64,000 bases of DNA from Camelus ferus (lineage: Eukaryota): NCBI RefSeq assembly GCF_009834535.1, contig NC_045697.1, positions 8,742,001-8,806,000 of the forward strand, written 5' to 3'. This document shows, one piece after another, positions 19,400 to 61,500 of this stretch (its first letter is position 1; every line of letters starts with the position of its first letter). The position numbers were made by a program, and so were the translations under genes. The notes under the pieces were generated by a model that saw nothing but the letters and a program-made list of their open reading frames with translations, was not told where the DNA came from and did not search any database.

Positions 19400-20360
<961 letters not shown>

Positions 20361-21589: not shown

Positions 21590-22055
21590 CTGAGACGCTG
21601 GCCGACATCTCACTGTCGCTCCGGCCCGCGGCTTCCTCCTCCAGGTCCTTGGCGGCGGGCAGCTCGCAGACCGGCTGGCCGAGGCCGAGGGTCCCCCCAG
21701 CACGGCAGGCCCCGCTGGCCCCCGGCGCGTCCGCGCAGCGCCGCCCACCCTCGTTCTCCTCGCTCATCGCAGAGTCCGAGTCCCAGCCGCCCGGGCTCTC
21801 CGCGGTCCGCCCCACAGCCGTTCTGGTCCCGGCAGGCGACGCCAGCAGAGAGTCCTCGGCGCCCCCCAGCGCGCCCGCGTCTGTCTCCCCAAAGAGCCGC
21901 CAGCAACAGACAGCGGGCGCCGAAGCCACTGCCACTGCCGTGCCCCCGAGTACCGGGCGCCCCTCCGGCGCGGGCAACCCTCCGCGCTCCTCTTTCTTGT
22001 TAAGGATCGCCTGGATGGAGAAGGGCGTCAAGGTGTTGGCGCCGCGCACAGCCAT
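21590..22055 (-). CDS. NKX3-2: NKX3-2 (BAPX1) coding exon 1, 466 nt, ends phase 1
   Basis: ATG at 22055 gives MAVRGANTLTPFSIQAILNKKEE (eh1/TN motif FSIQAIL). Frame is open to ...DSEMSASVS-G, followed by a GT donor at 21589-21588. Confidence 0.97.
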
Positions 22056-22609
22056 CTGCGCCGCGGGCCGGAGCGGCCGGGCGGGCGGCTGGGGCGCGGG
22101 GCAGCTCTGAGCTGGATGAAGCGCGCGGGCCGCCGCAGCGCGAGTGAGCCCCGCGCGCGAGGCCCCTGCAGCCCACTCCTGCGCTGCCCAGCAGCCTCCG
22201 CCCCCCTCTGGCCCCGGATCAGCGCCGACCCTCACCCCCACTTCCGAGGCCCACCGCACCCGGAGACCCCCTCCCCCCAATCCAGCGCCAGACGCTCTCC
22301 TTTCGCAGCTCAGCTGGATTATCTCATCGCCTCGCGCCCTTAGGGGCGGGCCGGGGTCTGCCCCTCGGAGGATGTGGGGGGAGGATCAGCGAAGCCCCTC
22401 CGCGGCTGCAGTCCCCTCCTGAGCGCCTCCGGGGCGCACGGCCCGAGTCACTTTTCTTTGCGCCTCTGTCTCTTCCCCTTCTGCAGGATTTCTCTCCAGG
22501 CTCGTCCTCTCCTTTTTCTGTTGGGCCGGCTCTTCCGGAGCCCACCCCCGGCAGCGGCGGCGGCGGCGGCAACAACGACCGCGGCCTCTGGATTCCGACA
22601 GACGCGGGG

Positions 22610-36736: not shown

Positions 36737-36854
36737 TTACCGCTTGGCCTTCTTCCCAGGGGCCTCCTCCACGCGCTGCTGGCCCCTGGTGCGCGCAACG
36801 GGAGGGCTGGCCTCTCTCTTGCGCTTGGCAGAAGGGGAGAGCTGTGCCTTTGAT
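36737..36854 (-). CDS. BOD1L1: BOD1L1 last coding exon (26), stop TAA
   Basis: tgcag|A TCA...; (R)SKAQLSPSAKRKREASPPVARTRGQQRVEEAPGKKAKR-stop. Confidence 0.95.
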
Positions 36855-39800
36855 CTGCAGTGAACAAAAGTCGAGGCCGAGGTAAGACTTAAAAGGAGCT
36901 GCTTCAAGTAATCTGGGAGTTCTTTAAAATACGTTAGAGTTCTAAACTTGAGAGCCGAGAAGAGAAAACCGGGGTAACGGCTACACAGGAGAAAAGGAGG
37001 CTCTAGAGGAGCCCGGCCTCCCGTGCAAACAGGGCGCCAGCGGGCAGTTAGGAAGCCCGTGCCTGCTTCAGCTCTGCCTCGCCCGACATGTTGCCCTTGG
37101 TCAAATCCACTTTCTTCTCTAGGCCCTAGTTCTTCTGTCTAAAACATAAAGAAATCAACAGCCGGTCCCACGCTGAGACAACCGGCAAGAACACAGCAGC
37201 GCGGCAGCCTGTGTCTGAGCAGGGACACGGCCGAGCTTCGTGCAGGACAGCTGGTGGCGTCAGAGAAGGCACAGGAACTTGAGAAGAGTTTTCTGCCCTG
37301 TCTCCCTGCCAGGAGCCTATCCCTGCTCTCCATTCTGCCTTTAGAGTGATTTGTCGGAAACTTCAATTAATCATGTTAAAGTCACTATCTTGTTTATCTG
37401 TCTCTACAGAATCAGAGCCTGCATCTTAGCAAGAGCCTCTGTGAGTGGTCTGCACATAATGAACCAGGCTTGCCTGAGAGTCTTCTCCTCACATGTAAAA
37501 TAAGGAAAAGTGCTACATTGTACCCAACAAGGACGGATGGGACAGCCTATGTGCAACGTGCCTGGCACTTCAGTTTGCCCCCTTTCCGTAAGCTGGGTAC
37601 GATGACGCATATACCTGTTGTAAGTGTGCTGTGAAGATCAAACGTGATGAGACATCAGAGGAGTTTTTGTATACTGTGAAGTCTTAGTTTTTGATGCTGT
37701 AATGTACAGAAAGCAAGACAAGTCCCTGATCTCAAGGAAGACGTTTATAACTCAGAGGGGGGAAGGAAAAGGAACACACTGAAGGCAGTGGCCTCGGCCG
37801 CCCTCACTGCGCAGCCCTGACCGGAGGTGCAGCGGGAAGGAGGAAGACGGGCCGAAGCAGACGGGGCGGCGTCCTGAAGGGGGGTGGTGTCTGTGCTGGG
37901 CGGAAGGACCTGGCTGCCTGGGGGCTGGTGGCGAGGGGGCTCCTCAAGGAAGAACCAGCACCAGCAAAGGCTCGGAGCAGGCTGGGCACAACTTGTGGGA
38001 AGCGGGAACTGGGCGGTGGGGAACGTGCAAATGGGCCAGTGGCTGTGCCTCAGGGGGCTCTCCTGTTGCCTTGCTGCCCCTCCAGTGCTCTGGGCTGTTA
38101 TCTGCTCGATCATGCTGCACCAATTTAACCAAGCATTCAGATCTGTGACCACTCGGAAAGAAATACGCTTGGCCTTCGGTCCCGGTGGTGGGAGTCTGCA
38201 CGTAAGGCTCACAGGATCAAGGACAAGCCTGTGCGGGAGGCCATGAGGTGGGACAGACTGGCGAGGCCGCCAGGACTCCTTCTGGCTGCTCTTCCTGGTC
38301 CTGTTTGGAGTAGGTTTCCATTTGGGAAACCAAGTGATTCCCAAAGACAGTTATTTGGCAAGACAGAAATTTTAGAGAAACTTAGGAAGAAAGCATCACT
38401 GCACCAGAAACAGTCTCGGGGCTAAAAGTGACCCTAAGTGTAGGCAAGACCCAGCCTCCTACTGGGGGAGATTTGCTTTTTTGCTGGTAAATAAATTCTC
38501 TTTTACTGATTTTTGGCGCTGTCTAGGAGAGACTGTTTGTGGGCTGCCACGTTTGGACGCTGTGCATGTAGACGGCTCGCTGGGATGCTTTCTGAAACAG
38601 ATTACAGAAACACCGGGCAGGGGAGCACTGGGCACGCCAGGCCCTGGGACTCAAGAAAGGTCCAGGCTCCTGGAGGGCAAGGCAGGGAATGGGGACCACA
38701 AGCAGGAAAACGGTTGGCTTTCTGGCCCATTGCTGGGGAGCAGAGCTGCGTTTCATCATGAAGACTAACTCTGCTTGCAAGACTCTGGCTCTGCCTTCAC
38801 TGTGCAGGATGGCATGTTGTGATTTGAAGATGAATCTGTGATAAACAGAAAATACCCTGGCTGGTGAGATAAGATCCCAAAATGCTCACCAGAGCAGAAC
38901 GAGGGGCCAAGACTGATGAAAGCACAGTTCACGAAGCTGAATGGTCAGGCCCCGTTACTGGGTCCAAACAGTCGATGGGCCCAGTATCAGGGAGAGGAGG
39001 TCTGACTCCTGAGCTGAGCTGGTGCGCAGCTCAGGCCGAGGGAGCCAGCAAGCCGGGGCGAGCTGAGGTGCGGTGTCTAGGAGACACGGCGGACAGTCCT
39101 CTTCCGGATTCATTAGCACACACTTCGTGTAGAACATTTGCTTCTTAAAGAAAATAAAGGTAAACTGAAGCTGAACGAACAAAAGGAGAAGACCTGGAAG
39201 CTGGCCCCCAGTGTGTCGGGGCAAGTTGTACGGGGGGCTCCCAGGGGAGAAGCTGCGGGGAGGAGGCTTCCACGGAACACAGGAAGAGAGCTGGGGAGGC
39301 GACCTACCCGGGCCCCGAGGCAGCGTGCAGGAGCCGAAAGACCCTTCCAGAGGAGCTGCTGGGTAGTGACGGGGGCACTGACGGGTAGGCAGTACCTCCC
39401 CAGACCCCATCTGACCCTGAGAATCTGTGAGGTTGTAACCACTCCAGAGCCCTGGAACCAATCAACTGAGGCCGAGGTATCTGGAGGGGAAAGAACCCGC
39501 CTGTAAGTCACAGCCCCTCGAGTGCATTGAAGGAGAAGCACCAGTAACCCAGGTGATTGCAGAGCCACACGTCACATATGGTTTATTTTTGTGGAATGAA
39601 TTTTAAAAGGCAAATCTGTTAGCTACTTTCAGACACTCAGGGGGAGATGCCGGGAAGAGCTACGGAAACTTCTCTGGGTTGGGCTCCACTGTACTGGACG
39701 ATCTTCCAGGACTGTTAAGGGGGAGGCGGTGGTGCTGGGCGGTGTCTCATCCGAGTGCACCCCCATTCTGTCTACCAGCAGGAACCCTGATTCTGTGGCT

Positions 39801-40869: not shown

Positions 40870-41023
40870 CTCTGAGCCTCTGATCTGGCGCTGGACCTCG
40901 TGGTGGCTCCAGAGGGCTCATCCTCTTCCTCCTCTTCCTCTTCCTCATCAGAATCCTGGTCTTTCTTGTCCTCAGCCGCTTCAGAAACTGATTTCTGGCG
41001 TTTTCTTTCCGGCTCGGAGGATT
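40870..41023 (-). CDS. BOD1L1: BOD1L1 exon 25 (154 nt, phase 1-2), acidic tract
   Basis: aacag|AA...CAGAG|gtaacg; (E)SSEPERKRQKSVSEAAEDKKDQDSDEEEEEEEEDEPSGATTRSSARSEAQ. Confidence 0.94.
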
Positions 41024-41426: not shown

Positions 41427-41508
41427 CAGCATCATCTGACAGAGTGAGCGAACGTTTGGGCTTTCTTCCTCTCCGCCGCACACTCGCCACAGTTTTTTCA
41501 TCATCATC
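41427..41508 (-). CDS. BOD1L1: BOD1L1 exon 24 (82 nt, phase 0-1), AT-hook-like RRRGRKPKR
   Basis: tttag|GAT...GCTG|gtacgt; DDDEKTVASVRRRGRKPKRSLTLSDDA. Confidence 0.93.
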
Positions 41509-41605
41509 CTAAAGGCAATAAAATTAAAGTTGAAAGGGTGGTCACTGGAGCATCTACTAAGTTTATTTCTAAAGTTCACGTCTTGATAACAGCGTTAACA
41601 CTTAC

Positions 41606-41655
41606 ATTGCTTCCACTTCGTTCTTGTAGGTTAAGTGTTTCTTTATTGGACTCAT
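41606..41655 (-). CDS. BOD1L1: BOD1L1 exon 23 (50 nt, phase 1-0)
   Basis: taaag|AT...AAT|gtaagt; (D)ESNKETLNLQERSGSN. Confidence 0.9.
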
Positions 41656-43544
41656 CTTTAAGAAAAGGAAAATCTCTGCATTAATACTTTATCAAATTTA
41701 ATTTCAACAGTCTGGCTTGTAGTCTATGAATGTACCAGAGCTAATTAAGGTACTGTTACACAATTTATCATTATTTTTTACAGCAGCCAAGCAAAGATCG
41801 TGGTGGAATACCTAAGCAGAGAGCACAACAGAACAAAAGCCAGGACGCTGAAGTCTGCATATTAGACCTGTCACAAATAAGCTATGTGATCTGGGCTTAT
41901 TACTTAAATTCCCCAAGCCTGAGTTTTTTCACCTGTGAGATGAGGAGTTGGGCTACACCACCTTCATGGTCTCTCTTTCAGCTCCAATCCCCTGAACCCG
42001 AAAAGGGAAGAGGGAGGGGACAACTAGGGAGCCCCCCCAGATGCAGCAGGAACCGCAGGTCAGGATTACAGACTTCACTGAAACCACAATGTAGCTCTAT
42101 ATATAGTACAATTATAGTATATTTCCCGTTTTGTAGTCAGGAAAAATGAGGTCTGAGTAACTAGTTCAGAGTCACATAACCAGCAGGTGGGGTGGTAGGT
42201 GGGATTCTTTCGACTCCATGCACTTATATCATGGTATCTAGAGAAGTGACATTTCATAAGTCCATTTTAGGTTGTATTTGCCTATTCTTTATATATTTGC
42301 TTTCTGTAGATGTTACCATTTTCTGAGAATGTAGCTTGGTTGAAAAAAAAAAATGAAGCTAAAATTATGAGGATGCTGATGAGACAATCAATAACCCAAA
42401 GGTGGACTTAATAGTGAGGAAGACTGTGTCGCTGCCTTTTCTCCAAGTTCACTTTGCTAACACAGAGAGAAGAGTTAAAAACCAAGAACAAGGCCCACAA
42501 AGAAGAATCCAGTCTCAAAAGGGTCACCATTACCCAGATTCAGAAAACGACTGATGAACGAGCCTCGAACATAATCACATGGCTTAAAATAGTCTTTAAA
42601 GGACATTCAAATTATAAAGATTTCTTCTTCTATGAATTTAATTATAAAATTATGAATAAAAAATGGTTAAAAACGAAACATCAGGAGAATCTTTTGTTAA
42701 AAAAAATAAACCTCCTTAATTTTCAAAGAGACAAGAAAAAGCATGATCACAGGATCACACACATAGTTAAATGTGGAAAAACCTTTAAATTACACAGTTG
42801 CTTTGCCTTGATATCAGAACATGTACTTTCCTGATCTGACCACGCTGTTTATTTGATTCAAAATAGCTGTCATATTCATCTTTTTTTGCCTATGTCAACA
42901 CTTAAAAAATCTACCAATCGCTCTTTTTGCTTGTATGTAAAAAAATTTAAACTGTGAATTTAATATATACACGTGGTAAACACTCTGGAAAATGCAGGCA
43001 GCAGTAACAACACTGGAGGGCTCCTATCATCTCACCACCCAGAGCTAAACATTATCAGCATTTTGGAATATTTTTTTTCTCCTTGGAATGAGGCCAAAAA
43101 TACTTCACTGAAACAATTTCCTCTCTTGCATCCTAGCTCTGTAAGCTGCACAGGCTGCTTTCAGAATTCTCCTTCTGAGAACAAGAGCCTCTTGGGCTGA
43201 ACTCCTGTCTTCCTGATAAGGGTGCCAGTTCCCACGCTGATCTACTTGTCCCTGACACATGTCCTGTAAAGTGTGGTTTGGACACAGTGGTGCCTTCCCT
43301 CTTTTGCTTTTTGTTGCCTTCACCCTCCTCCTTAAAGGCTTTCCAGACTAACAGAGAATCTGAGAATGACTCAGATCACAGGAAAAGCCAAGAGCTATGG
43401 TCTCTCATGGCTACAAGGACAGCCTTTTCCACCAAGAAAGGCACCCACATCACTGAGAAGCGTGACACTCTACAACCTCCCCTGCCAGCCAGCTCCCCCA
43501 CCCCTCCCTCAGATCATGCACAGGGCAGGGCTTCAGGTACACAC

Positions 43545-43590
43545 CCGTCTGCATTGCTTTCAGTTTGCTGCCAGGTGGAGACTGTTCTAC
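43545..43590 (-). CDS. BOD1L1: BOD1L1 exon 22 (46 nt, phase 0-1)
   Basis: tttag|GTA...ACGG|gtgtgt; VEQSPPGSKLKAMQT. Confidence 0.87.
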
Positions 43591-43899
43591 CTAAATTTAA
43601 ACAAACAGAAAGTTGAAGTCAGTAGTTTGTCATCATAACACAAAAAGTTAATCAATAATGTAAAGAAGGTTTAGAACTGCTGTTTATTACATAGGCAGCA
43701 TAGTTGGAGCCTACTTTCTGCAGTTGACTATACCAAGCCATGGCTGCCTATGACTCTGAACACACAGGCCTTTCCAGAAGGAGAACTAGGGCTGCCACAA
43801 GCCTCTTCCCTGGCCACTCTGCTGCTGCACCGGGAAACGCGCACCGGAAGTCCCCCAACCCTGGCAAACCATCTTACATGCTGGTAAATGCATTCACAC

Positions 43900-44080
43900 C
43901 CTTACATGTGGCTCTTTGTTTCTGTTATCTTGTAAGAATTCTCGTGAGATAATTAATGCAGGTATTGTTATATCCAAGGAAATGGGAGTCTCGAGAGGGT
44001 CACATGATTGGCACAGTGTCACAGATCTGCAAGTAAGTGGCAGAGCTGAGGCTTGAATCCCATTTGCTTTTGTTAGGTCA
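43900..44080 (-). mobile_element. MIR
   Basis: GTCACAGATCTGCAAGTAAGTGGCAGAGCTGAGGCTTGAATCC. Confidence 0.6.
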
Positions 44081-44635
44081 GTGGGCGTGGTTTGTCCCCT
44101 TAACAATGCTATCACTGAAACCCAGGCAATGAAGCCTTGATACAATAATTTTGTTGGGTATACACTTCAGAACCAAAGATAAAGAATGTTAGAAAAGATA
44201 AAGCAGTACTGTGGATTTTCCTGCACTGAAACTAGCATACATTTTATAAAATTAACTCCACAGAAAGTAGTAAGATGGTGAGACACTTTGAAGGTTTCCA
44301 AAAAGAAACTACTATCTAAAAATCATACAAAACAGCTATTTTCCATACTTTAGTCAAGGATGACAAGAAGATAAGCCCCTAAATAATTTTTATATGCCAA
44401 GCTCACAAGTGAGGATAGAGCCAGACTGAATTACAACTGATATAATTATGTTTATATGAAGCTATCAGTAATCAGAATATCTTTGGAATGGTTATTTGAT
44501 GTTTTATTTATGAAAGTCTCTTAAAGCTTTTCAAATACTTAAAACAAAGGTAGTTGAAAATACTAATGTTGCAGTGAACTCTTTCTAGGTCAAGAGCAGA
44601 CGTCTGAGGAGTTGTCATCTTTTGCAATTACTTAC

Positions 44636-44670
44636 AGTGACGATGCCAGTATCTGTTTTGTAGTCATCTT
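44636..44670 (-). CDS. BOD1L1: BOD1L1 exon 21 (35 nt, phase 1-0)
   Basis: tttag|AA...ACT|gtaagt; (K)DDYKTDTGIVT; preceded by an 81-nt intron. Confidence 0.9.
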
Positions 44671-44751
44671 CTAAAAAATGAAAAATACAAGTCTTAGAAA
44701 ATCAGTTTGAAAATCTCTTGCATGTGAACTGAAAAGACACCAAATACCTAC

Positions 44752-44827
44752 TTGTTTTTAATGCTATTTCTACAGGGTATTTACGAGGTCTTCCTCTTTT
44801 CCTTTTAATAATTACTGGTTGATCTTC
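44752..44827 (-). CDS. BOD1L1: BOD1L1 exon 20 (76 nt, phase 0-1), canonical AT-hook
   Basis: cttag|GAA...ACAA|gtaggt; EDQPVIIKRKRGRPRKYPVEIALKT contains the RGRP core. Confidence 0.94.
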
Positions 44828-45853
44828 CTAAGGGGAAAAGGAAAAAAAAAAAAGCAATAAAAATTTTTCATTCTGTATTATGCAAGTTTGTCTTCCCAAA
44901 ATAGGATTTAGAGTTCTCTCTTCAGAGGTCTCAAATCCCAGCTGCGTCTCTTAAAAAATACGTGATCCTGGGTTTGGTGCTTCACTGCTCTCAGTGCAAT
45001 TCCCTCACCTGATAAACATTGCTAACTGGAGTAGAATTTACCGAGTCGTGAGGATTATGGGATTTAGGTAATGGAAATAAGCTCTCAGTGTTAGCTTTTA
45101 CTTCTGTAATAAATATATGTGTCCATTTAAATGTGGATTTAGTCCTAGTCACTTGTGACCAAATGTGATTACTTATTAAAAAAAAAAAAAGGAGGCCACT
45201 GAAAACAAACAGAACTATTAAAAAGTTATATCAAGACTGGCAAACTTGGCAATGTCTAGAAGACCTGGCTGGTGTACAGGTTGTTTCCCTTGATTTATGG
45301 GCCTCTGTCTCACGTCACCAGGATTCTGTGCCCTCCTGGTCTCTCGCAAATCTGAAGGGGCCTGGAACGGGTAGTGCTGGAGGTCTGCCTGCTCCTGCAG
45401 CCTCCCAGGAGTCCCTGATGTCGCCTTGTCAAACTGGGTCCCGTTCGGCACTTGCCGCAGGCCTTCTGCACACCCTGCTGCTGCCCCCATTTCTTCCTGC
45501 CAGACTCCAGGGCTCAGCAGCCCTGTTCTCTGACCTGAACTGGTGCCTGGCCTGGCCGTGCTAAGCTGCCAAGTCAGGAACTAACATGGACACCGAGGTA
45601 CAGCTCTCGGCCGATCCCACATGGCCGACACAATTAGGTCTCATACAAACGTTTGGATAAAACGAAGATACAGAGAACAGAATTAATCAAAATGACAGTG
45701 ATCAAGTGTACCGCATGAAATGCTGTCCCAATGTACTAAAAAAAAGCTACTTCAAAAGTACTTAAGAAATATGGGGAATAGCACTGAGTGCATTTTACTT
45801 GTTTTTAGTACTTAAATAAATCTGAACAAATAAATACGAAAAACATTCCTCAC

Positions 45854-45927
45854 CTCCTGAGATTTTATGCTGTCATCATCATTCTGCTCTGTCTTTTCAC
45901 CAGCAGCTTCACCACTGCTATATTCAT
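45854..45927 (-). CDS. BOD1L1: BOD1L1 exon 19 (74 nt, phase 1-0)
   Basis: tgcag|AT...GAG|gtgagg; (D)EYSSGEAAGEKTEQNDDDSIKSQE. Confidence 0.93.
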
Positions 45928-46286
45928 CTGCAGAGAGAGCAGAGCCCTGTTCACTGCTGGGGACCACAGTCAGCCAGGACACCTACCGAGGGGACCTGTG
46001 TCGTCCCTGTCACGTGCACACACAGACTCCGTTCTCAGGCGGACACCACCGAAGTTAATAAGCTGGAGTCTGGTTAGCTGGTAAGAAGCATACTTTGGGT
46101 AGGACAGGGTCCAAACTACAAATCCTAAGCCCTAGTGATACTCAGCACATCAGACTGTGTTATAAAAGGGAAGGCAAGTCAGTGAACTGCGGTTTCAGCT
46201 GGCGGAGCCTCGTGAGAGATGTGCTGGCTGCTTTGAAGGATTAGTCTCTTCTCAAAACAATTTATCTATGTAGATGTGTTGCTCAC

Positions 46287-46371
46287 CTTTTTCTTCCATG
46301 GCCCTTGAAGCAGAGCTGTTTGCCTTAGAACTTGTTTTCGATAACTCTTCCAAATCTTCAGAATTCTCTTC
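46287..46371 (-). CDS. BOD1L1: BOD1L1 exon 18 (85 nt, phase 0-1)
   Basis: tgtag|GAA...AAAG|gtgagc; EENSEDLEELSKTSSKANSSASRAMEEK. Confidence 0.93.
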
Positions 46372-47514
46372 CTACAGAGAAGTTGAACAAGACAAGAAGC
46401 TTCTTTTTCATACTTGACCCTACTTCCACTTATCCTCCCCAAAGTTTTCCTTTCAATTTCAACAACATATTCCAAGCAGTATTTTAGATATTTGTTGGAA
46501 ATTTTTTAAAAGGTAACTATTTTGCTGCTCAGGAGACCATACAAAAAGATAACAAATTCTGCAGGCAGAAAAGCATGAGATAAGGTTCAACTATAAAGCA
46601 ACAAGGCCATTATTTTTTCCTTGCAAAGAGGAAGTCACTCGGCTCCTTCACCCTGGACTATTTAAGAGAAACTCCAAAGAAAGAACTGAAAGGAATTTAC
46701 AACAGATTTTTTTTTCTTTGTTGGGTGGTGGAGGGGAGGGGCTGGGGGAAAGGGATAAAGCAGAAGGTAACAAAGAGAACTGCTGATTTCTCAACAGTTG
46801 AATTATTTGCCTTTAGTTGCAAAAAAAGTTTTGAGCATGAAATACCAAATTGTTTGTACTATAATACTAATATAATTATAAACAAAAATATACAAATTAA
46901 ACTTAAAATCAGAATACTGTTTTATAATATTATTATTTGTATATATGATTTTTAAATGAAAATGGTTAAGGTAGAGTATATTTAAATTTAACATTAAAAA
47001 ATTTACATGAAATTGAAGGGAAAATAAAAGTATACCCTTTAACTGCTTCTCTCCAAATTCAGGAGTACTGTCTCGAGGCTTTTGTTCTGGATAGGGCACG
47101 GCAGTGATGGGCTTTTTAAAAGCCAGTTTCTTTCCTTGGCCATGACCAACTGAAATTCATGGCAAAGTGTGACTTTACCACTTTCGTTGTTAAAATTCTT
47201 TTACTACGTTTTATTTAGTTTATCAGTTACTGTGTGAAAAAGAGACTATAAGCTGGCTTTAGTGAGCTGGAAGTCAGCTGCATGCTTTTATAAGCTGACA
47301 ATTACAAAACAAAGTGGAGAAAGACGAATTAGGGAAAGAGAGAGAATGAGAAGAGGGAGGGAGACTGAACAGACAATGGGAAGTACTGAGTCTCAGAAAC
47401 AGGAGGACACCTAAGAAGATTATCTACCAGGGAATGGAGAAGCCTGGGCCCAGAACAAGAGATGGTAAGAGCAGAAATAAAAAATCGTGAGCCACTTTCC
47501 TGAGTCACGGATGA

Positions 47515-47981
47515 GAATAAGAGTAAAATAATGTCATTTGCAGCAACATGGATGGACCTAGAAATCATCACTCTAAGTGAAGGAAGCCAGAAAGAGAAAG
47601 AAAAATGCCATATGATATCACTCATATGTGGAATCTAAAAAAAAAGAAAAAAAGAGGACACTAATGAACTCATCCACAAAACAGAAACAGACTCGCAGAC
47701 ATAGTTAACAACCTTATGGTTACTGGGGGAAAGGGTGTGAGAAAGGATAAATTTGGGAGTTTGAGATTTGCAAATGTTAGCCACTATATATAAAAATAGA
47801 TTAAAAAGAGCAAATTTCTTCTGTACAGCACAGGGAACTATATTCAGTATCTTATAATAACCTTTGATGAAAAAGAATATGAAAATGAATATATGTATGT
47901 ATATGCATGACTGGGACATTGTACTGTACACCAGAAACTGACACCTTGTAACTGACTGTACTTCAATTAAAAAAAAAAAAA
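47515..47981 (+). mobile_element. 5'-truncated L1 in a BOD1L1 intron, antisense to the gene
   Basis: TTTGCAGCAACATGGATGGACCTAG through CAGCACAGGGAACTATATTC to a poly(A) tail. Confidence 0.9.
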
Positions 47982-48478
47982 TCCAATCTGGGGGAAAAAA
48001 GAACATAGGAGAAAAAAGTAATAACTGAGGAGGGCCCATCGTTGGACTACCTATATTTTAGGAGCTGGAGGTATGGTAAAGAGGATGAATATTCAAAATT
48101 TTAAATAGTATGTATCACTGAATTTCACTGTTTGGATACAAGTATTTCTGTAATAAAGCATACTACATTTTGGAAGAAAGCACCTAGAAACCTAAAGAAG
48201 TCAATAATACGACTGAACAAAAACCTAAGCAATGATCATATTTAAAATGTGGCATTAATACAATCTTGCAGTTTAAGATTATAAAGTGCAACATTTTTTT
48301 TTCTTTGAGAGCCTAAAAAATATACATCTTTTATAATAAAGTGATTATTATTAGAGATACATAAAGTAAAAGGGATACAAGAACGAACTCTCTCTCTATA
48401 TATATAGATAAAGTAAGTATTCACAGTGATATAATTAGGTTACTTCTAAAACTTAAAATTAAAATGTGGAAAAAATAC

Positions 48479-48558
48479 CTTTGCATCTTGTGGCTCAGTT
48501 TCAGAACATTGCCTCTCTGCCGTTTCTATTTTGGAATCCAGGACATCTGGATTATCAT
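48479..48558 (-). CDS. BOD1L1: BOD1L1 exon 17 (80 nt, phase 1-0)
   Basis: tacag|AT...AAG|gtattt; (D)DNPDVLDSKIETAERQCSETEPQDAK. Confidence 0.93.
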
Positions 48559-48879
48559 CTGTAAATCAGTTTGGACAGAATCACAAAGGAATAAAAGCTA
48601 AATGAAAAATGAAATGCACAGTTCTATTTTAAGACCATTTGAGACTTCTTTCTTAGGCTTATGATGCAGTGAAACCAAAGTTATTCTAAACGTCCTTATA
48701 ATGTCATGTGATTTGAGCACCAAACACTGGCCTTGGCCCTAGCAAACTGAAAAAATAAAAAACAAAACAAAAAAATCTACAAATGCTCAAATGACACCAA
48801 CAAAGCAGGAGCCTCTATGGAGAGGGCTCAGGACATACAGAGTTCCCAGAGATACCTTTAGCTTCCTGAATGAATTATC

Positions 48880-49080
48880 ACCTAAGAGGCATGGCTTAGT
48901 GATTAAGACCATGATCTTGGGAATCAGATTTACTTGGTGGAGATGGTCACAATTTCTCAGAATCTTAATTTCTTTATTTATAAAATGGCAACAATACCTA
49001 ACACACAGTTATTAGGAATGTGTATAAAGTACCATGAATAGTATCTGCTTACAGCATGAACTCAGTAATTATAAAATGAT
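48880..49080 (+). mobile_element. MIR
   Basis: GCTTAGTGATTAAGA...CTTTATTTATAAAATGG. Confidence 0.5.
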
Positions 49081-49214
49081 CACATGCTCCTAACCAAAAA
49101 ATGAAAGCATTTAATTATCCATTCTTTCCCACATATTATTTAACAAGTGTTTATTAAGTTGGCACTTTGTGTCAGGAATCAAAGTGTAAAAGCCTCTGCA
49201 CTGTCAGGAGTCAT

Positions 49215-49365
49215 CTGCCACGTGTGGCCACTGAAATTTAAATTAAGTTGACTACAATTAAAAAGTCAGTCTTTCATTCACTGACCACATTCAAATGCTC
49301 AACAGTCACACATGGCTGGTGGCTACTACTAGACAAGGCAAACAGAGAACACTTCCATCACTGCA
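49215..49365 (-). mobile_element. MER3-like hAT relic
   Basis: CCACGTGTGGCC...AAATTTAAATT...CCACATTCAAATGCTCAA...ACATGGCTGGTGGCTAC. Confidence 0.6.
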
Positions 49366-49779
49366 GCAATGGCGTCGTTACGGACCGAGACCACAACCGT
49401 ATGAAGCACAGAAGGGCTATTATCACATATACGTTACTACGGTGCTTCACTAGTTCGGGGTGGGGGGGACCTGCTTATGATATAAAATAAGGACCTCAGT
49501 GACATCTGGCTGGGTCCCAGGCCCAGGTTACAGAGAGAGGCTGGGTTTTTGTGATTTCCAGGGGCTGGGTATTCTGCAGGAACAATCTAGTTTCTCAGTC
49601 AAGTCCAGAAAGACCCTGGAGGTATCAAGTAAGTCTGGAAACAAACCAGACTCAAGCGTTATAAAGTAAAAAAATTACTACCCTCAAGAATTTTCTATGT
49701 TATTGGCCCACCATTTTGGATACGAAGATAATATGATTCTCAAACACGTCTGAAACAGAAACACAAATACTCTCAGTAC

Positions 49780-49852
49780 CTAGCTCATCTTCTGAAGAGA
49801 GGTACTGCTTCTTCCTTTTTCTTTTAGGCATATCCGTTTCTTCCTCTTCAAC
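49780..49852 (-). CDS. BOD1L1: BOD1L1 exon 16 (73 nt, phase 0-1), basic motif PKRKRKK
   Basis: tccag|GTT...CTAG|gtactg; VEEEETDMPKRKRKKQYLSSEDEL. Confidence 0.92.
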
Positions 49853-50485
49853 CTGGAATTAAGAGTGACTATATTAAAGGCAGTAGAATTTGGATCCAAA
49901 CCTACTAAAAGAGGGCACATATTGTATTAGTTTCTAGCTTTTGGAATAAAATTTCTAAAAATCTAGAATAATACTTCTGACATTTAGATCTGGATTAGAT
50001 TCATTTTATAAGCTTGAGTCTTCTTTTTTTTTTTTTTTTTTAAGATTTGAATGTAAATCCATTCAAAACATCCAAATCTATTTCTGGTTATTTCTAAAAT
50101 ATGTTAAAATATGCTAAAATAATTCTCTAAAATATATTAAAAAAAATTCTCATTACTATCTCTGAAATCAAGCTATGTCTTATAACTGATGGCATGCCAT
50201 AAGTTGATTGGCCGCACTTCTCTCCTCTCAGTGGCCCACTAAGGAACTGACGAAAGGCAGTATATGAAAAAACATTCTTGGCGATCCAGTATGGACATGC
50301 CCAAATAATCCTGGACCTGCCAAACTACCTAAAGCTTACAAGAGCATAAACAAGTCAAAGTAGTGCGGAGAACTCTTAACATATGCACTCAATTTTTAAT
50401 ACATACAAAGAAGCAAAGCCTTTGTGCACAGAAGGAAACACCACGCATAAAACATGAAATATTTGAATTTCGTATGAAAACCCAC

Positions 50486-50559
50486 CTCTTCAGTAGGATT
50501 TTCTCCAACACTATGACCTCTTGTGGCTTCCGTGTTGTCTCTTCCATCACTGGATATCT
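50486..50559 (-). CDS. BOD1L1: BOD1L1 exon 15 (74 nt, phase 1-0)
   Basis: ctcag|AG...GAG|gtgggt; (E)ISSDGRDNTEATRGHSVGENPTEE. Confidence 0.9.
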
Positions 50560-51653
50560 CTGAGTAATAAATTGGGAAAATGAAAGATCCTGTTTCAACA
50601 TCATCAGATTACAAGCCTTCAACACCAAAAGTCTGACAACACCAAACACGGGAGAAGGCGTGGAATGACAACTGCCGCACACTTGGGGACAATGCGGCCC
50701 ATTCAGAAAGCTGAAGAGGTGCCTATCAAACCAGCAACTCCACACCTAGAGTTACAGGGACACTGCATGTACACTGGGAAATTGGTGCGTGGTGGCTCTC
50801 TCTGTGGCTGGGACAAGCTGCAAAACCCCTAAATGTCCACTAACAAAAGAAGTAAAACAGTAACTGTGGTATAGTCACACAGTGTGACACTAAAGAGCCA
50901 CTGAAATAAAGCAACTAGAATTACACATATCAATATGACAAAAAAAGATGGGGATTGTGGAGGGTATAATGTGCATTCAACTATATCTGTAACATTTTAG
51001 AAAAAGGTTATGAAGCAAATGTTAACATTTTTATGTCATTTTAAGATAAGACAAATCTAGGTGATGGGTACATGGGAGTTTATAATTATTGCTGCTTTGC
51101 TTTGATTGAATATGGCACATAATACGTTATAAAAATAACCGTGTAGGGGATTAAGACCTCTTTCTCCATTCTTGGAATAAGGAATCAACATAATTCCACA
51201 TTTTGTTTGAGAAGAGCATGATTGCTCTGGAGTTGGCAGCCCCTAGGGCTGCGTGGACTGAGGGCCGGCTCCTGGGTGACGAGCCACACGAATGTGACTC
51301 CCTGCTCTGCCGCCACATGGAGGCTGCCTGTCTGGAGGCAACACAGTTGAGTACTTAACACAGAACTTGTCCTACAGTAAAAACCACAGGGACAATACAC
51401 CTTGTATTTACGCTGGATAAATCCGTTGTGAGGTTACCAGCAAAGTCCTGGTAGCTATTTAAGCACAAAGCACCGTGTACAAGCTACGTGGCCTTGAATG
51501 AGCCGCTGGACCTCTCCATGAACCAGTTTCCTCACTGGCACATGTGATGCCAGTCAACATTCACTTCACCAGATCATATGAATTAAATGAGAGAACATCT
51601 GCTAGGTAATCGTAATTAATATTAAAAGTCCTCCTATGAAATTCGTAACTTAC

Positions 51654-51711
51654 CTTCCTTGTTACGAGATATGCTATGAATTTCATTTGTTCTTGAGCCT
51701 GAATTTTCGAC
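51654..51711 (-). CDS. BOD1L1: BOD1L1 exon 14 (58 nt, phase 0-1)
   Basis: tatag|GTC...GAAG|gtaagt; VENSGSRTNEIHSISRNKE. Confidence 0.9.
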
Positions 51712-53169
51712 CTATACACACAATAGAAAAGGTTACTTACAGATAATCTCACAAAAATCTCAAAGGTTGGAAAAAAAAAAAAAAAGGAAGGTAATTTACA
51801 TAACCTGGCCATTTGTGGGAATGTTAAAAGGAACTAGAATATATGTTCTTTTAAATTTTACCCAGAAGCTCAAGAGCACAGGGTAATTTTCTTTCTGAAG
51901 AAGTTTCAGTTTAACAGGTTAACATCACACTGTTTATTCTTGTCTTTAAAATGGTTATGGCAAAAAAGCAAGATATAGGAGAGAAAAAGTTTTGGAATTG
52001 CATGAATTCTCTTCCCATCTAATGGCCTCTCATGATTTTCTTTTCTCTTTACTTAAAAATATTGAAGGATTCTGTCATTCTGTTATAAGGCTTCCCTTTG
52101 GCAAATCTCACCAATTATACTTTTTTTTTTTTTAAACTGAGGGGAAGTCTCAGAATATCCTACAACATTCTAATTCCTAATTACAGAATTTCATATTTGG
52201 AAAGGATGGTTATACTTAGACGAGGAAGAGGCAGCTGCTGGGGGACTCGGGGAAACAAGGTAGGACCAGCACATGCTGGGGGAGTTCACAACACTTCGCT
52301 GGCTCTGGAGGTTTCAGCCACATTTAGAATTCTTTTAACTTCGGGGTGGGGCTAAACCTGAACAGAATCGGGGGAGCTTTTCTCTTCCTTTTACTCAGCA
52401 GACTGTGTGTGTTTCTAGATGCAAACTGGGATGTTTCAACAAGGTGGGGTAAGCCCTCTGATGCTGTGGGTGTCTGGTAGCAAGCAGAGCTCTTCTGAGT
52501 CCTCTGGGGCACTGAGAGACTGTGCTGGCTGCCTGCGATTTGCAAGCACTTTACAAAATGCTCACTCCTCTATGCATTAAGAAAAACAATCAAAAAAACC
52601 ACAAAAAAACCTTTCAAGCACAAAAGGGATTGTGAGAACCGCAGCTGGGAAAAAATTTGTATATATGGCAATTATAGTTCAGTCTGTTCAAAAAAGCTTT
52701 CTAAAAACATAAAGTGAACTTTAGTTCTTAAATTCAGTTTGGCCTATAGTACCAGGATAATTTAAGACATGGTCCAATTTGCAATTCCATTATAGTAATA
52801 AAAAAAATAGAAAGTTTCTAGTTCTTTGAAGGGTTTCATTAGGATTACCAGGGGAATTGCCTGGTCTGAGGGGCCTGGGCCTCCTTCTGTTTCCTAGTTC
52901 TGGCTCACGACATTGGCCTAAAAAGCCACTAGAACACAGTGCTGCTGAATTCAGGCGGACTCCCTTTTTCTGACGTCAGTGCATATAGCTGAGCGTGGAA
53001 CTGGACGTGTCAGCAGGCTGAACCCGAATGAAGAGCACGTTTCAAGGGTCTCCTGTCTCCTAAAGAAATGTGCAGCGAGCCCCTCCCCTAAACGTAACCA
53101 CTCTCAAAACACCAAACCCAAATAACCCCAACCGATAACAACAAAACCCAAGCCATGTTGGTGACTTAC

Positions 53170-53213
53170 GTTTAGTGATTCAATCGCCAACGAAGGTGCC
53201 CTCTGAACTTCAG
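53170..53213 (-). CDS. BOD1L1: BOD1L1 exon 13 (44 nt, phase 1-0)
   Basis: aacag|CT...AAC|gtaagt; (A)EVQRAPSLAIESLN. Confidence 0.88.
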
Positions 53214-55403: not shown

Positions 55404-55488
55404 CTATTCCACTCAGATTTCTCCCACTTGGACTTTCTGGTGGTGCTGGAATTTCATGATTTTTCTCTTCCTCTGATGGCGCAAATAT
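55404..55488 (-). CDS. BOD1L1: BOD1L1 exon 12 (85 nt, phase 0-1)
   Basis: ttttcag|ATA...ATAG|gtaaat; IFAPSEEEKNHEIPAPPESPSGRNLSGI. Confidence 0.9.
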
Positions 55489-56660: not shown

Positions 56661-56725
56661 CTCAGTTTCCAAGTTGGCTTTCGGTCCCTGTCCTCTCAAG
56701 TCACTCGATGGAGACTCTTCACTGC
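56661..56725 (-). CDS. BOD1L1: BOD1L1 exon 11 (65 nt, phase 1-0)
   Basis: ttag|GC...GAG|gtatgg; (G)SEESPSSDLRGQGPKANLETE. Confidence 0.88.
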
Positions 56726-58596
56726 CTAATGAAATTCAAACCATTAGATCAATTTAAGAATCTGTGAGCAAAATACATCCTGAATCAAAAGGTAACAGAA
56801 AGTTGTATCTAGCATGCCATTCCCTCTTCCTCCGCTCTCAGCAGAAAACAATAAAAAGGAGTATATATGAAAATTCTCAGATGAAAGGCAAGGGGTCATT
56901 GACTCTTTTTTGGGGGGGTTGGGGATAAAAATGCTTCTTGTTCTTAAGATGGCCACCCAGAAAGAATGACACAATATTATTTGTGAAGTCATCGTATTTC
57001 CAAGTGCTTTTCTACAGTGATTTGCATTAAGTATGTCCCTAAAAGAAAGTATTCTCTGCCACTGAGATATATTCTCAGTAAAGGTGATTTGTGAACAGAC
57101 TCACTTTACATGCATCATGCTGATACAGCAAAGCTGAACATACAGTTGAAAAACTGTGAAGTTGATAAAAAGAGAATGGCATTTTCTCTGGTGGAGACTC
57201 AAATCTATCTCGTCCTGGCCCTCTCTTTCCTTCTCTCCTCTGTCCTGCGACTCGCGGCTTCTAGCTTCCTTTACCTGCCCACATGCAAGCCTCAAAGAAA
57301 AGCCTTCCTTCCTCTAAGAGGCTGCAGGCTTTCCCTTGCTGAAAGCCCTTCTAGTTCTGCTTCTTCAGGGGGAAGAAAGTGGGGGAGGGAGGGAGGGCGT
57401 AGCAATAAAGTAGCAGTAGCAATGGTTGAGTCACAAAAACTTCCAGAGCATCCAATTTATCTCAGGCTAAATTCAATGGAAATTTTTAAAGTTACTTATT
57501 TCAACTGTTGGAACATTTCTTAATGTCTCCTATAACCAAGAGGACTAAATCTACTGGTCTCAGCCTCTGGAGGCTGCATTTAGATGATGTCTAAGACCCA
57601 TTCCAGTTTAGAAGTCCAGGATACTACAATTTATAAAATTAGAGTGGAAAAGAAGTCAACACTCCTGACTGCTTCAAGCCCAGCCCATGTGACCCCTGAG
57701 TTCTCACAGCATCCTCTGGTTAACCCTATTCTAAGTGCCTGTCACATTGCAGTGTCACTGATTACGTACAAAACATTGCAGAATTCACAGCTGTCTTCCC
57801 ATCTGGACTATTGTTTTTGAGTCCACAGTGGTACCTGGTGTAACATGTCTGAAGTGGGAGGGCATGAATGACCGAGCTCAGAGCTTGTACGTTTGAAAGT
57901 TATCAACTATTTCTAATAAGACCAGCACTCTCTGAAATCTACCAGGAGGAAACACGTTTCTTTTCTTTTTTCAAACAAATTCTAAACCGGAAACTAACTT
58001 ATTTATGTGAACAATAAATTACAATTAAAAAAAAAAGTGCTCCCTTGATTAGAAGCAGCCAGCCCGCCGGCACTGACACGTCCTTTGAATCTGTAAGTCA
58101 GATGGAGGTTGGACTGATGCTTGTTTTTGTACTATTATCCCCCTGTCATACAAGGCTCAGAGCTAACCTTTCTTAAGTAGCATCTGAGTACTATTCAAGT
58201 TATTTAAACTCTCTGAACCTTTTTTCCTCATCTGAAAAAGGAGGATGATTTAAAATAAATACCCATTTCACAGGGCTGCTGTAAAGTATCTTCATTTTGA
58301 TTCATAAGAACCCTGAAGGTCAAATAGGTTTAGTAACTTGCAACCATCCTGCGGATGACACTTGTCCAGCTGACGTCCTGGCTCTCAGCCTCCTGCCTCT
58401 ACACTCATTGCACGTAAGTAAGTGGGTCTAACTTTAAGTTTTAAACACAATTTTAGAGAAGCTTGACCTTCAAGATGGATGAGAGTTATTCTGTGACATT
58501 CTAGAACCAAAACCATCTTTTAAAAGATGGTCTTAAATGTCCTCTACATACAATTATCTTTGTAAAATGTGAAAACTTGCAGTTAGAGATTCTCAC

Positions 58597-61500
58597 CTAT
58601 GTCATGCAAATTTTCTTCAGATGAAACACTGACTTCAAGGCCTCCTTCTTCCTGGAAGGACTTCTTCATGCTGTTACCATCTCCCGTGTGCTCAGGGTAT
58701 GCCGGAACGGTCCCTTCGCCACTGGGATCACTCTTGAAAGTCAAGTCCTGTTCGCACTTAGGAGCCAAGAGAGCTTCGTCATAGGTAGCTGTAAGGACTG
58801 CCGTGTGGGAAGGAGCAATTTCGGATTCTTGGCCATTAATACATTCGGTGGTGGGGGCTGTCAAGTTGCCCTCAGGCCCCCACTGGTCAGGAGGAAGAGA
58901 GGATGTGTCATCAGCTTTTCCAGCACCGGTATTTACTGCACGGCGAACACTGATGGGGGAGTCCTCGGCGGCCTGCTCTGGTCCTCGCAGGTCGACAGGC
59001 AGGTCTGCACCCCTCTCCAAGCCCCTCCCTGCTGAACAGCTTGCCGGAGTACTGTCCCCTGAGGTCCCTGCCTCGGGGCTTTCATGTTCTCTCTGAGCTT
59101 TGCCCAGACAGCAGGCTTCCCTTTCTTTGGTGCCAGGCCTCTCTTTCTCTGGTGCACACACAGCACCGGCAAAGCACATGCTGACTGACACCCTGTCGTG
59201 CTCTTCCCAGGTGCCCACTGCCACCACGGGGCCCGCTTCTTTTCCTCCTGTGGATGGCCCGGGACACTGACAGTGGTGCTCAGGCATGAGGCTGGGCCTA
59301 GGGACCTCACACTTGCGCACCTTTGCGGCTGACAGGTCGTCTCTGCCTTCTGGGGGGCCTGCAGTCGGCTGAGCCTCTTCGTGCCTGTCTGGACCCGTGG
59401 CGGCCAGCACACATTCAGCTGTGCTGGTGGAGATGAGGGCAGCATCGCCCGGGTCCTCCACCCCCGCGAGAGCCGTCTGATCGTCCCGGGGGGCGGCGCC
59501 CATCATGACCGCTTCCCGTCCTTCAGAGGTGCTGGTGGAAATCATGGCGGCGTCACTCATCTCCTCCGCCGGCGTGACCGAGGGACAGACCTCCTCCCGA
59601 GGGACGGCACTGGACACTGGGCCGTCGCAGTCCTCCACGGAGCTCGTGGAGATGACAGCGCTCCCGTCCTTCTCTTCCAGGCCCGGCACGGCCGCCCCGG
59701 AGCCGGACGCCTCACACTCTTCTGCGATGCTGGTGGAAATGAGGGCGCATTCGTCCTTCTCCTCCTTGCTGGTTGAAGCCAGGGGACTTTCGACTTCTGT
59801 GGGTGCACTGGGCATGGGCACCTCGAAGTCATCGGCGCGCACCAGGCTCGGCCCTCTCGCTCTTTCTTCAACCGCTGGGGCGGGCGGCTGGCTTTCGGAG
59901 CGCTGGATGGTTGTCGCGCTGGAAATGGGCACTTCGAGCTCCTCCCCTATGCTTGTGGAAATCATGGCGCACTCGTCTTTCTCCTCGCCTCTAGGAGCAG
60001 CGGGCTGGCTCTCATCTCCTGCAACAGCGCTGGGCATGGGGGCCTCGAATCCCTCCACGTTCACTCTGGTGCCGTCGGCGATTTGTTCGGTCCTCAGAAC
60101 ACGCGCGTGACCTTCCTCCACGTCTACAGCCGGGCTTAACTGCGCGGTGTAACCATGCGTGGTACTGGTGGAAATCGCCAAGCCTTTGCCTTCGCTTTCG
60201 CCCCTTGCTGAACAGGTCTGGTTGGCAAGGCTGTCGCTGGCCGTGGTGGCCATGAGGCCGTCGCAGTCTTCATTGTCCACAGAGGTGATGACACCCTCAT
60301 CTTCTTTCTCGCTCGGCGATGTGTGATGAGCTTCGTACTCTGGGACGGCCCCGGATACGAGTCCCTCATAACTGCCCCCGGCCAGGCCAGTGGAAATAGT
60401 GGTCTCGTCAACCTTTTCCTTTCTGGTGACCTGCCCGCCACTTTGACCTGAAGCTGCACTGGTCATGGGAACCTCACAACCTTCACGAACTAGTGCCGCT
60501 TCGCCCTGGCCTGCGGCTGCACTGGTCACGCTGCTTTCCACGACGCCTTTTGCACTGGAGCAGATCTCTGGATCTTTGCTTCCCTTCCCAGCACCGCTCA
60601 CGCTGTCAATGTTACTTTCGGTTGCGTTTGGGACGGCTGCTCCGGCCTCAGCTTCCACACGCCCCGCCGCGGTACCAACCCGACTGTCCCCCTCCTCTGC
60701 ACTCTCGCACACTGCTGCCCCGTCGCCTTCCTCTTCCATCCCCGCGCACATCGACGCGTGCCCGACTTCATTTCCTCTGCCGGTACTGGTCACCACGCCC
60801 TCCCCTTCCTCGTCCTCCTCCTTCGCGCCGGTGCTGGTCACAACGCCTTCGTCGTCGCACGGGCCGGCAGCGACTACCGGGGCGTCAGCGACGTCTTTAG
60901 CTACCGTGCTGTCCATGGCACTTTCTCCGCCTTCTTCTGATTCGGAACTTAGAGCAAAGCCTTCGCTGCTCTCTTCCGAACCTGTGCAGCTTGCCGGCCC
61001 CTCTCCATCCTCTTCCGTGATCCCGGTGCTGGTGACAGCGCTGTCACCTTCCAGCCCGTCGTTCACAGAACCGCCTCCCTCCTGGGCGGCACTGGCTCCT
61101 GCTGGTGCGTCATTGCCCAAGGGGACTACAGGGGCACCGGTGACCCCGCGCTCTTCCTGTGGCCCCACATCAGTTACCGAGCACAGGACAAAGCTGTCAC
61201 TTGTCCTCTCTGCCCCCGTACATGTCACAACCCCCTCAGTTTCTTTCTTGGGGCCCATTCTCGTCGTATTTCTCCGGAATCCATCTCCCTCTCCGCTGCC
61301 CAGGGACCCCTCTCTGATTTCTGTCCCAGCACTCGTCACCGCCCCGTCACTTTCCCCCTCACTAATAAAAGCGACGGTCCCTTCCGCCAGTTCTGAGTCT
61401 CTGCTTGAAGAGCCATCACACTTCCCTTCCAAGCCTGCACTGGTCACAGCGTCGTCCTTCTCTTCCGTCGCCCCGCTGTTGACATCGTCTTCAGTCGTGC

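Follow-up and report, generated by a model that had tools for sequence, protein, structure and literature searches.

An apparent four-exon period in the short 3' exons of BOD1L1 and its probable ordinary sources

A 64,000-nt stretch of the Camelus ferus genome (contig NC_045697.1, positions 8,742,001 to 8,806,000; the whole stretch is called the window below) carries twelve short exons between positions 41427 and 53213, which are genuine, conserved 3' exons of the chromatin gene BOD1L1 (biorientation of chromosomes in cell division 1-like 1; exons 13 to 24, here E13-E24). A preliminary description of this DNA, made from its letters, had noticed a period of four exons in the array and proposed that an ancient four-exon unit was triplicated and has since diverged below the reach of standard repeat finders. 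Our analysis indicates that the impression of a period of four probably has ordinary sources: exon starts that would look alike wherever they stand in the array, basic motifs that would only happen to sit four exons apart, and the coincidence of a few exon lengths. A triplicated four-exon module is very improbable, and the finding is mostly ordinary. The feature that does repeat is a pair of hook-type exons, E20 and E24, four exons apart and conserved across amniotes.

The part of BOD1L1 that lies in the window, on the minus strand, is its 3' two-thirds. An open frame of 1783 codons (58583-63934), which continues beyond the window edge, is 100% identical to a protein of the same genome (P0001, 3006 aa) and shares 64-74% identity with named BOD1L1 proteins of many mammals; the top named matches are BOD1L1 of cetaceans, hippopotamus, rhinoceros and others, and named orthologues span mammals to reptiles. 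P0001 is a full-length BOD1L1 orthologue, with an N-terminal COMPASS-Shg1 domain (PF05205) and a long tail, and E13-E24 encode part of its disordered, acidic, serine-rich C-terminal region. Exon borders were fixed by exact k-mer mapping combined with a splice-site search that was required to reproduce P0001 residue for residue, and every junction in the resulting map is AG/GT. The fifteen introns from intron 10 to intron 24 have phases that strictly alternate, 1,0, and any two adjacent exons of E11-E24 total a multiple of 3 nt. In the following map the exons from E11 on are exact spliced matches to P0001:

58597-64000, minus strand: E10, 3' part of the giant BOD1L1 exon (P0001 residues 807-2608), donor at 58597, extending past the window
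56661-56725, minus strand: E11, 65 nt, phase 1 to 0
55404-55488, minus strand: E12, 85 nt, phase 0 to 1
53170-53213, minus strand: E13, 44 nt, AEVQRAPSLAIESLN; missing in lizards (Pogona map)
51654-51711, minus strand: E14, 58 nt, VENSGS...
50486-50559, minus strand: E15, 74 nt; missing in birds (zebra finch map)
49780-49852, minus strand: E16, 73 nt, with a PKRKRKK cluster resembling a nuclear localization signal (NLS); missing in birds
48479-48558, minus strand: E17, 80 nt
46287-46371, minus strand: E18, 85 nt, EENSEDLEEL...; same length in five amniote genomes
45854-45927, minus strand: E19, 74 nt
44752-44827, minus strand: E20, 76 nt, AT hook KRKRGRPRKYP; motif invariant across amniotes
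44636-44670, minus strand: E21, 35 nt, after an 81-nt intron
43545-43590, minus strand: E22, 46 nt, VEQSPPGSK...
41606-41655, minus strand: E23, 50 nt (35 nt in sauropsids, from the maps of other genomes)
41427-41508, minus strand: E24, 82 nt, hook-like RRRGRKPKRSL; RGRKP core almost invariant across amniotes
40870-41023, minus strand: E25, 154 nt, PERKRQK and an acidic run, phase 1 to 2, which ends the alternation
36737-36854, minus strand: E26, last coding exon, KRKRE ... KKAKR and then the stop

Two of the introns are very short, 81 nt after E20 (44671-44751) and 97 nt before E24 (41509-41605), both on the minus strand; the remaining introns of the array measure 0.36-2.1 kb.

The individual observations behind the proposed period are accurate. 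In the spliced map E14, E18 and E22 begin VENS, EENS and VEQS, and E15, E19 and E23 begin EISS, DEYSS and DESN; E17 reads DDNPDVLDSKIET and E21 reads (K)DDYKTDTGIVT; E15 and E19 are both 74 nt long, with E16 at 73 nt and E20 at 76 nt; the phase alternation is present; and E16, E20 and E24 carry the basic clusters PKRKRKK, KRKRGRPRK and RRRGRKPKR. Further basic clusters lie outside these three exons, ERKRQK in E25 and KRKRE and KKAKR in E26. The motifs and lengths of the pattern stand, but the four-exon triplication drawn from them is supported in part only and is not demonstrated: the odd exons give no signal, and the copy number shows no four-exon change among amniotes.

For comparison across lineages we collected tails from eutherians, marsupials, platypus, crocodilians, turtles, birds and lizards and reduced them to 83 sequences with <90% identity. 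A representative-library search with the 407-residue tail returned 20 matches, all from amniotes, as were the best 120 matches listed for the orthologues, and the comparisons that follow cover amniotes. Exact exon maps were derived from the genomic loci of platypus, Crocodylus, zebra finch and Pogona (L001, L003, L004 and L005), with these lengths in nt for E13 to E24 (a dash marks a missing exon):

Platypus: 41, 88, 74, 85, 68, 85, 74, 76, 35, 46, 47, 85
Crocodylus: 44, 85, 71, 70, 77, 85, 74, 73, 35, 40, 35, 85
Zebra finch: 44, 88, –, –, 80, 85, 74, 76, 35, 46, 35, 85
Pogona: –, –, 74, 76, 80, 85, 68, 76, 35, 49, 35, 85

The 1,0 alternation and most exon lengths are kept in all four genomes, an exon and phase architecture that has been conserved for >300 million years and altered only by exon pairs. 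E15 and E16 are missing in birds, E13 and E14 in lizards (a tblastn search for E13/E14 relics in the 23-kb Pogona intron gave no match), and predicted isoforms in several species drop exons 16+17, 18+19, 21+22, 23+24, 11-14 or 21-24. Variation takes this form because the alternating phases require it. The preliminary description had suggested looking for lineages with two or four units; amniotes differ by two exons only, as birds and lizards each do, and no amniote lineage differs by a whole four-exon unit. E14 is shortened in eutherians, being 85-88 nt in platypus, crocodile and finch, and the genome exon maps place the ~10 additional residues of non-eutherians in E14, not in E15. In elephant, sloth, marsupials and platypus E16 is 12 nt longer (VEISxQ...) than the short form found in the window, a difference that may reflect either alternative acceptor use or a lineage change.

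We next asked how far exons four apart resemble one another once composition is controlled. Exon profiles were made from the 83 sequences, in exon-respecting alignments built with clade-specific exon borders, and the local profile-profile score of each exon pair was compared with 500 column shuffles that keep composition and conservation. Ranks refer to the 100 groupings into triplets that respect phase, the six odd exons and the six even exons being divided separately. The shuffles are well calibrated, non-predicted pairs having a mean z of -0.15 and a standard deviation of 0.93, with 5% above 1.64. Over all amniotes the basic exons gave z 4.1 (E20-24), 3.9 (E16-24) and 2.4 (E16-20); E14-18, E14-22 and E18-22 gave 2.4, 1.7 and 0.3, a weak signal of the ENS type; E15-19, E19-23 and E15-23 gave 1.3, 0.8 and 0.5; and the three pairs among E13, E17 and E21 lay between -0.6 and 0.5. 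The predicted split ranked third of 100 overall, first of 10 for the even exons and third of 10 for the odd ones, and the overall rank is due to the even exons entirely. The comparison of exon i with exon i+4 that had been proposed as a check is, in short, positive for the basic even exons, weakly positive for E14/18/22 and negative for the odd exons.

The rank of the predicted split changes with the clade, from 3 of 100 in eutherians to 17 in non-eutherians, 19 in sauropsids and 34 in crocodile plus turtles. Outside eutherians E20-24 is still strong, with z 3.8-5.2 (5.2 in sauropsids, 5.0 in non-eutherians), whereas the values for E16-20 and E16-24 drop into the range -1.5 to 0.9 (E16-20: -0.5 in sauropsids, 0.2 in non-eutherians). 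The E14/18/22 signal is weak in these animals (z 0.5-2.3; -0.9 to 0.6 in crocodile plus turtles). The alignments show the reason for E16, whose lysine/arginine cluster is fully formed only in mammals, as KRKRKK or ERKRKK; crocodile has MSEMRKKQ in its place, turtle MPGMEKKQ and lizard MPETNRRL. The third basic cluster is a mammalian acquisition.

These results bear directly on the proposal that E13-16 was triplicated into E17-20 and E21-24 before the amniote divergence and then drifted, for which we see very little likelihood. It accounts for a mean z at lag 4 that is the highest among lags (1.37, with exon borders projected from the window), for the rank of 3 of 100 obtained with eutherians as with all amniotes, for the mutual match of the three basic exons in mammals, for E14/18/22 z values of 1.9-2.3 in eutherians and 1.6-2.3 in non-eutherians, and for the lengths 85/74/76 common to units 1 and 2. 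However, the odd exons, half of all, are without signal; the lengths of unit 3 (35, 46, 35, 85) fit neither other unit, E24 having the length of E14 and E18; outside mammals E16 has a weak basic cluster or none, and the exon is closer to E25 than to E20 or E24; the rank falls to 17-34 of 100 outside eutherians, and scores taken in register favour lag 2; copy number never changes by four exons among amniotes; and the pattern was chosen post hoc on this very sequence. Resemblance at lags 4 and 8 is seen for E20-E24 in all clades and for E16 in mammals only, and is otherwise weak or absent.

Profile alignments with hhalign, whose P-values are uncalibrated for 25-column low-complexity profiles such as these, single out the same pair: E20 against E24 gave P 3e-5 over 19 columns, and E17-20 against E21-24 gave P 1.3e-4, through the hook core and ten columns across the E22/E23 border. 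Four-exon units aligned without their basic exon gave P 0.27-0.77, and E13-16 against either other unit gave P 0.05-0.08. The best partner of E16 was the PERKRQK start of E25 (P 0.0014), compared with P 0.086 for E20 and 0.02 for E24. At the nucleotide level blastn found only matches of <=36 nt among the three units, apparently chance or low-complexity, an absence that is expected if the event was ancient; exon-level nucleotide scores picked out only the AAG/AGA-rich basic exons. Smith-Waterman comparison of single sequences with shuffles, too weak a test on its own, likewise set apart only E20-E24.

One could read the E20/E24 pair as the trace of a single partial duplication in an early vertebrate, either of the AT-hook exon alone or of E17-20 into E21-24, with unit 1 unrelated. 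E20-E24 is the top pair in every profile comparison except the eutherian-only exon-respecting one, where it comes second (z 2.4-5.6), and the hhalign value points the same way; both exons run from phase 0 to 1, their lengths are 76 and 82-85 nt, and the spacing of ~70-74 residues between the hooks is kept in the complementary DNA (cDNA) of a more distant vertebrate (P0161/L002; KRKRGRPPKRR ... SRRGRKSKRSL). Yet the likeness consists only of [VI]x[KR]3GR[PK][RP][KR] and one leucine, which is the AT-hook consensus of unrelated proteins; the flanks fail to align, E17-19 against E21-23 giving an hhalign P of 0.42; and the unit lengths differ. We consider one old exon duplication quite unlikely, for this pair as for the partial duplication in general, the alternative being convergence on a short basic motif. 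The more distant sequence itself (L002, a 2266-nt contig of Logan SRR5149438) is a BOD1L1-like tail cDNA with both hooks; being spliced, it is silent on exon borders. Its upstream acidic open reading frame (ORF; 3-830) and its hook ORF (805-1599) are in different frames, a break that comes either from a frameshift in the assembly or from a piece that was retained.

The two hooks are not equivalent. E20 (KRKRGRPRKYP) is by eye a canonical AT hook and scores 14.8 bits against Pfam AT_hook (PF02178), under the cut-off of 17.4, whereas E24, with the core RGRKP rather than RGRP, has no PF02178 match even at E<=10. By the Pfam definition the E24 motif would be classed as AT-hook-like only. In our preferred account, that of ordinary sources, the basic motifs (NLS-like in E16, an AT hook in E20, RGRKP in E24) would simply happen to sit four exons apart, only E20 and E24 being ancient and alike. 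Their likeness goes no further than the hook core and the residues directly beside it. A common function, such as minor-groove or acidic-patch binding or nuclear import, could uphold that likeness without common descent.

The alternating phases could point to a different period: a two-exon cassette (phase 1-0-1) would have been duplicated in tandem again and again to build E11-E24, the copies would since have diverged, and the period of four would be incidental. Eutherian, platypus, crocodile, finch and lizard genes all keep the fifteen alternating phases, and wherever lineages differ or isoforms are predicted, adjacent exon pairs are involved. Pairs of like parity also score slightly above those of unlike parity (mean z 0.16 against -0.35; Mann-Whitney p 0.015). 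E14/E18, E15/E19 and E16/E20 had equal ancestral lengths, and homology therefore predicts ungapped similarity at offset zero; in this register the three pairs reached z 1.2, 2.0 and 0.4, and the lag-2 pairs were higher, at 2.6 for E14-16, 2.7 for E15-17 and 3.2 for E17-19. The different-phase pair E17-20, however, scored 3.1, and the mean z was 0.8 for lags 4/8, 1.3 for lags 2/6/10 and still positive, 0.6, for different parity. These values point to a generic composition gradient along the exons, not to homology or to a period of four, and weigh against a period of two as well. In addition, the lag-2 mean z is ~0 in local profile comparisons, and cassette sizes range from 81 to 165 nt. Serial growth by two-exon cassettes with an incidental period of four strikes us as no likelier than the single duplication.

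The duplications can also be combined, the array being what is left of cassettes duplicated in an early vertebrate: serial copying of a two-exon cassette may have come first, E13-16 may later have given rise to E17-20 in one go, and the hook-bearing exon may finally have been copied again to give E24. Pairwise frame compatibility would then have been kept because pairs such as E23+24 can be skipped or lost without breaking the frame. That all these steps occurred together is unlikely, if slightly less so than either simpler duplication. Skipping of that pair is in fact predicted in several birds, whose isoforms P0245, P0246, P0249-P0251 and P0253, gene predictions only, lack E23 and E24, so that the RGRKP hook-like motif is removed and the canonical E20 hook retained; this may be a regulated switch.

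Returning to the ordinary sources, a first would be that nearly all exons begin alike, with V/E/D followed by D/E, wherever they lie in the array. The junction codon, formed from AG|G or G|gt, starts with G, and GAR or GAY usually follows. In this species the junction codon is G-initial in 13 of the 15 exons E11-E25, as read from first and last exon bases, and 11 of the 12 exons have D or E as their second residue. Purine-rich GAR/GAY codons are typical of splicing enhancers in short exons; together with G-initial junction codons they may produce these starts in an acidic protein, and the starts would then reflect splice-site and enhancer constraints. Identities in the first four residues average 0.86 per pair when every exon pair is counted and 1.25 for pairs at period 4, and by this statistic the predicted grouping is among the best two of 100 that preserve phase here, on the sequence where the pattern was noticed. 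Elsewhere two other eutherians put it at 6-12 of 100, elephant and sloth at 76-82, marsupials at 21-92, platypus at 67, and crocodile and turtles at 7-26, which is only mildly high for crocodile and turtles and unremarkable (67-92) for elephant, sloth, opossum and platypus. A shuffle of residues within exons had given p < 1e-4 for the start motifs; we discarded it as the wrong null, since all starts are acidic whatever the period.

The remaining source would be the coincidence of a few exon lengths. Ancestral lengths were 44, 85, 74 and ~76 nt in unit 1, 80, 85, 74 and 76 nt in unit 2, and 35, 46, 35 and 85 nt in unit 3, so that three of four match between units 1 and 2 and none for unit 3, the match in phase being trivial. 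E24 combines the length of E14/E18 with the sequence of E20.

Several results weigh against this account. Acidic starts are less pronounced in sauropsids, at 4-5 of 12, and the splicing-enhancer reading of the purine-rich starts is tentative. The even-exon grouping is the best of 10 for all amniotes and for three of four clade subsets (fourth of 10 in crocodile plus turtles), and the whole predicted grouping comes third among 100 for all amniotes. In several lineages ENSG and a TxEE-like stretch are common to E14 and E18 (z 1.1-2.4). The lengths of E14-16 (85-88, 74, ~76) equal those of E18-20 (85, 74, 76) on the platypus, crocodile and lizard maps, and we estimate roughly that a length coincidence of this kind would arise somewhere in the array with a chance of ~10-20%. 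Finally, fifteen alternating phases are too regular for chance and suggest some modular origin. The ordinary sources are compatible with the whole array having first arisen by much older cassette duplication, and that some such duplication lies behind it is possible, albeit doubtful. Were a cryptic triplication true, it would account for the construction of a long disordered tail in which DNA- or protein-binding motifs are spaced out, and for its alternating phases; as the evidence stands, we are dealing with a known gene and known motifs, plus coincidences.

Other exon arrays and hook proteins offer points of reference. Titin PEVK exons, nebulin super-repeats and the 54-bp exons of collagen genes are short and symmetric, come in long runs with regular phases and clear sequence repeats, and encode low-complexity or repeat protein, whereas the BOD1L1 exons are asymmetric, becoming symmetric only in pairs, and their repeat similarity is at or below the detection limit. 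HMGA proteins, disordered and acidic with ~100 residues, have three canonical AT hooks, each in its own small exon. BOD1L1 likewise has its hooks in small exons, but only one of the two is canonical, the other being degenerate, and they lie near the end of a protein of 3000 residues.

The BOD1L C-terminal tail has been described as carrying one AT hook and several NLSs (PMC11381347), and its basic stretches as NLS, Aurora A sites and a PP2A-B56 binding surface (PMC12794331); the published features, namely the disordered tail, AT hook, multiple NLSs and PP2A-B56-binding basic stretches, are all present here. RGRKP is also the core of the second AT hook of MeCP2 (KKRGRKP), a weak binder of AT-rich DNA (PMC5028900). 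E24 has the identical core, and in both the proline is shifted by one residue from RGRP; the proteins are otherwise unrelated, and any DNA binding by the E24 motif is putative. Neither PMC11381347 nor PMC12794331 mentions the RGRKP motif of E24, the alternating-phase exon array or an internal duplication. BOD1L1 has, in this respect, a second conserved hook-like motif undescribed in those two papers, which predicted isoforms remove together with E23. The motif and the isoforms are handles for dissecting the contacts of the BOD1L1 tail with chromatin or PP2A-B56.

Rfam, tandem-repeat and DNA self-comparison searches of the window returned nothing bearing on the exon array. Downstream of BOD1L1 lie a homeobox-type ORF (19595-20068, minus strand) and, upstream of that ORF, a GC-rich one (21447-22280, minus strand). 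The homeobox-type ORF fits the synteny of other mammals, in which NKX3-2 adjoins BOD1L1. Another gene model from the same genome, P0002 (3002 aa), has a homeobox Pfam match, which suggests a fused mis-annotation.

At 38457-38593 on the minus strand there is also a relic or alternative exon, 25b (RKHPSEPS...SKSPPVG), that is not in P0001. Its counterpart is a 144-nt phase-2/2 exon that some mammalian isoforms contain and that is constitutive in platypus, crocodile, finch and lizard. The copy in the window is only ~60% identical to those of elephant and horse, and its two halves match in different frames; exon 25b may be in decay in this species.

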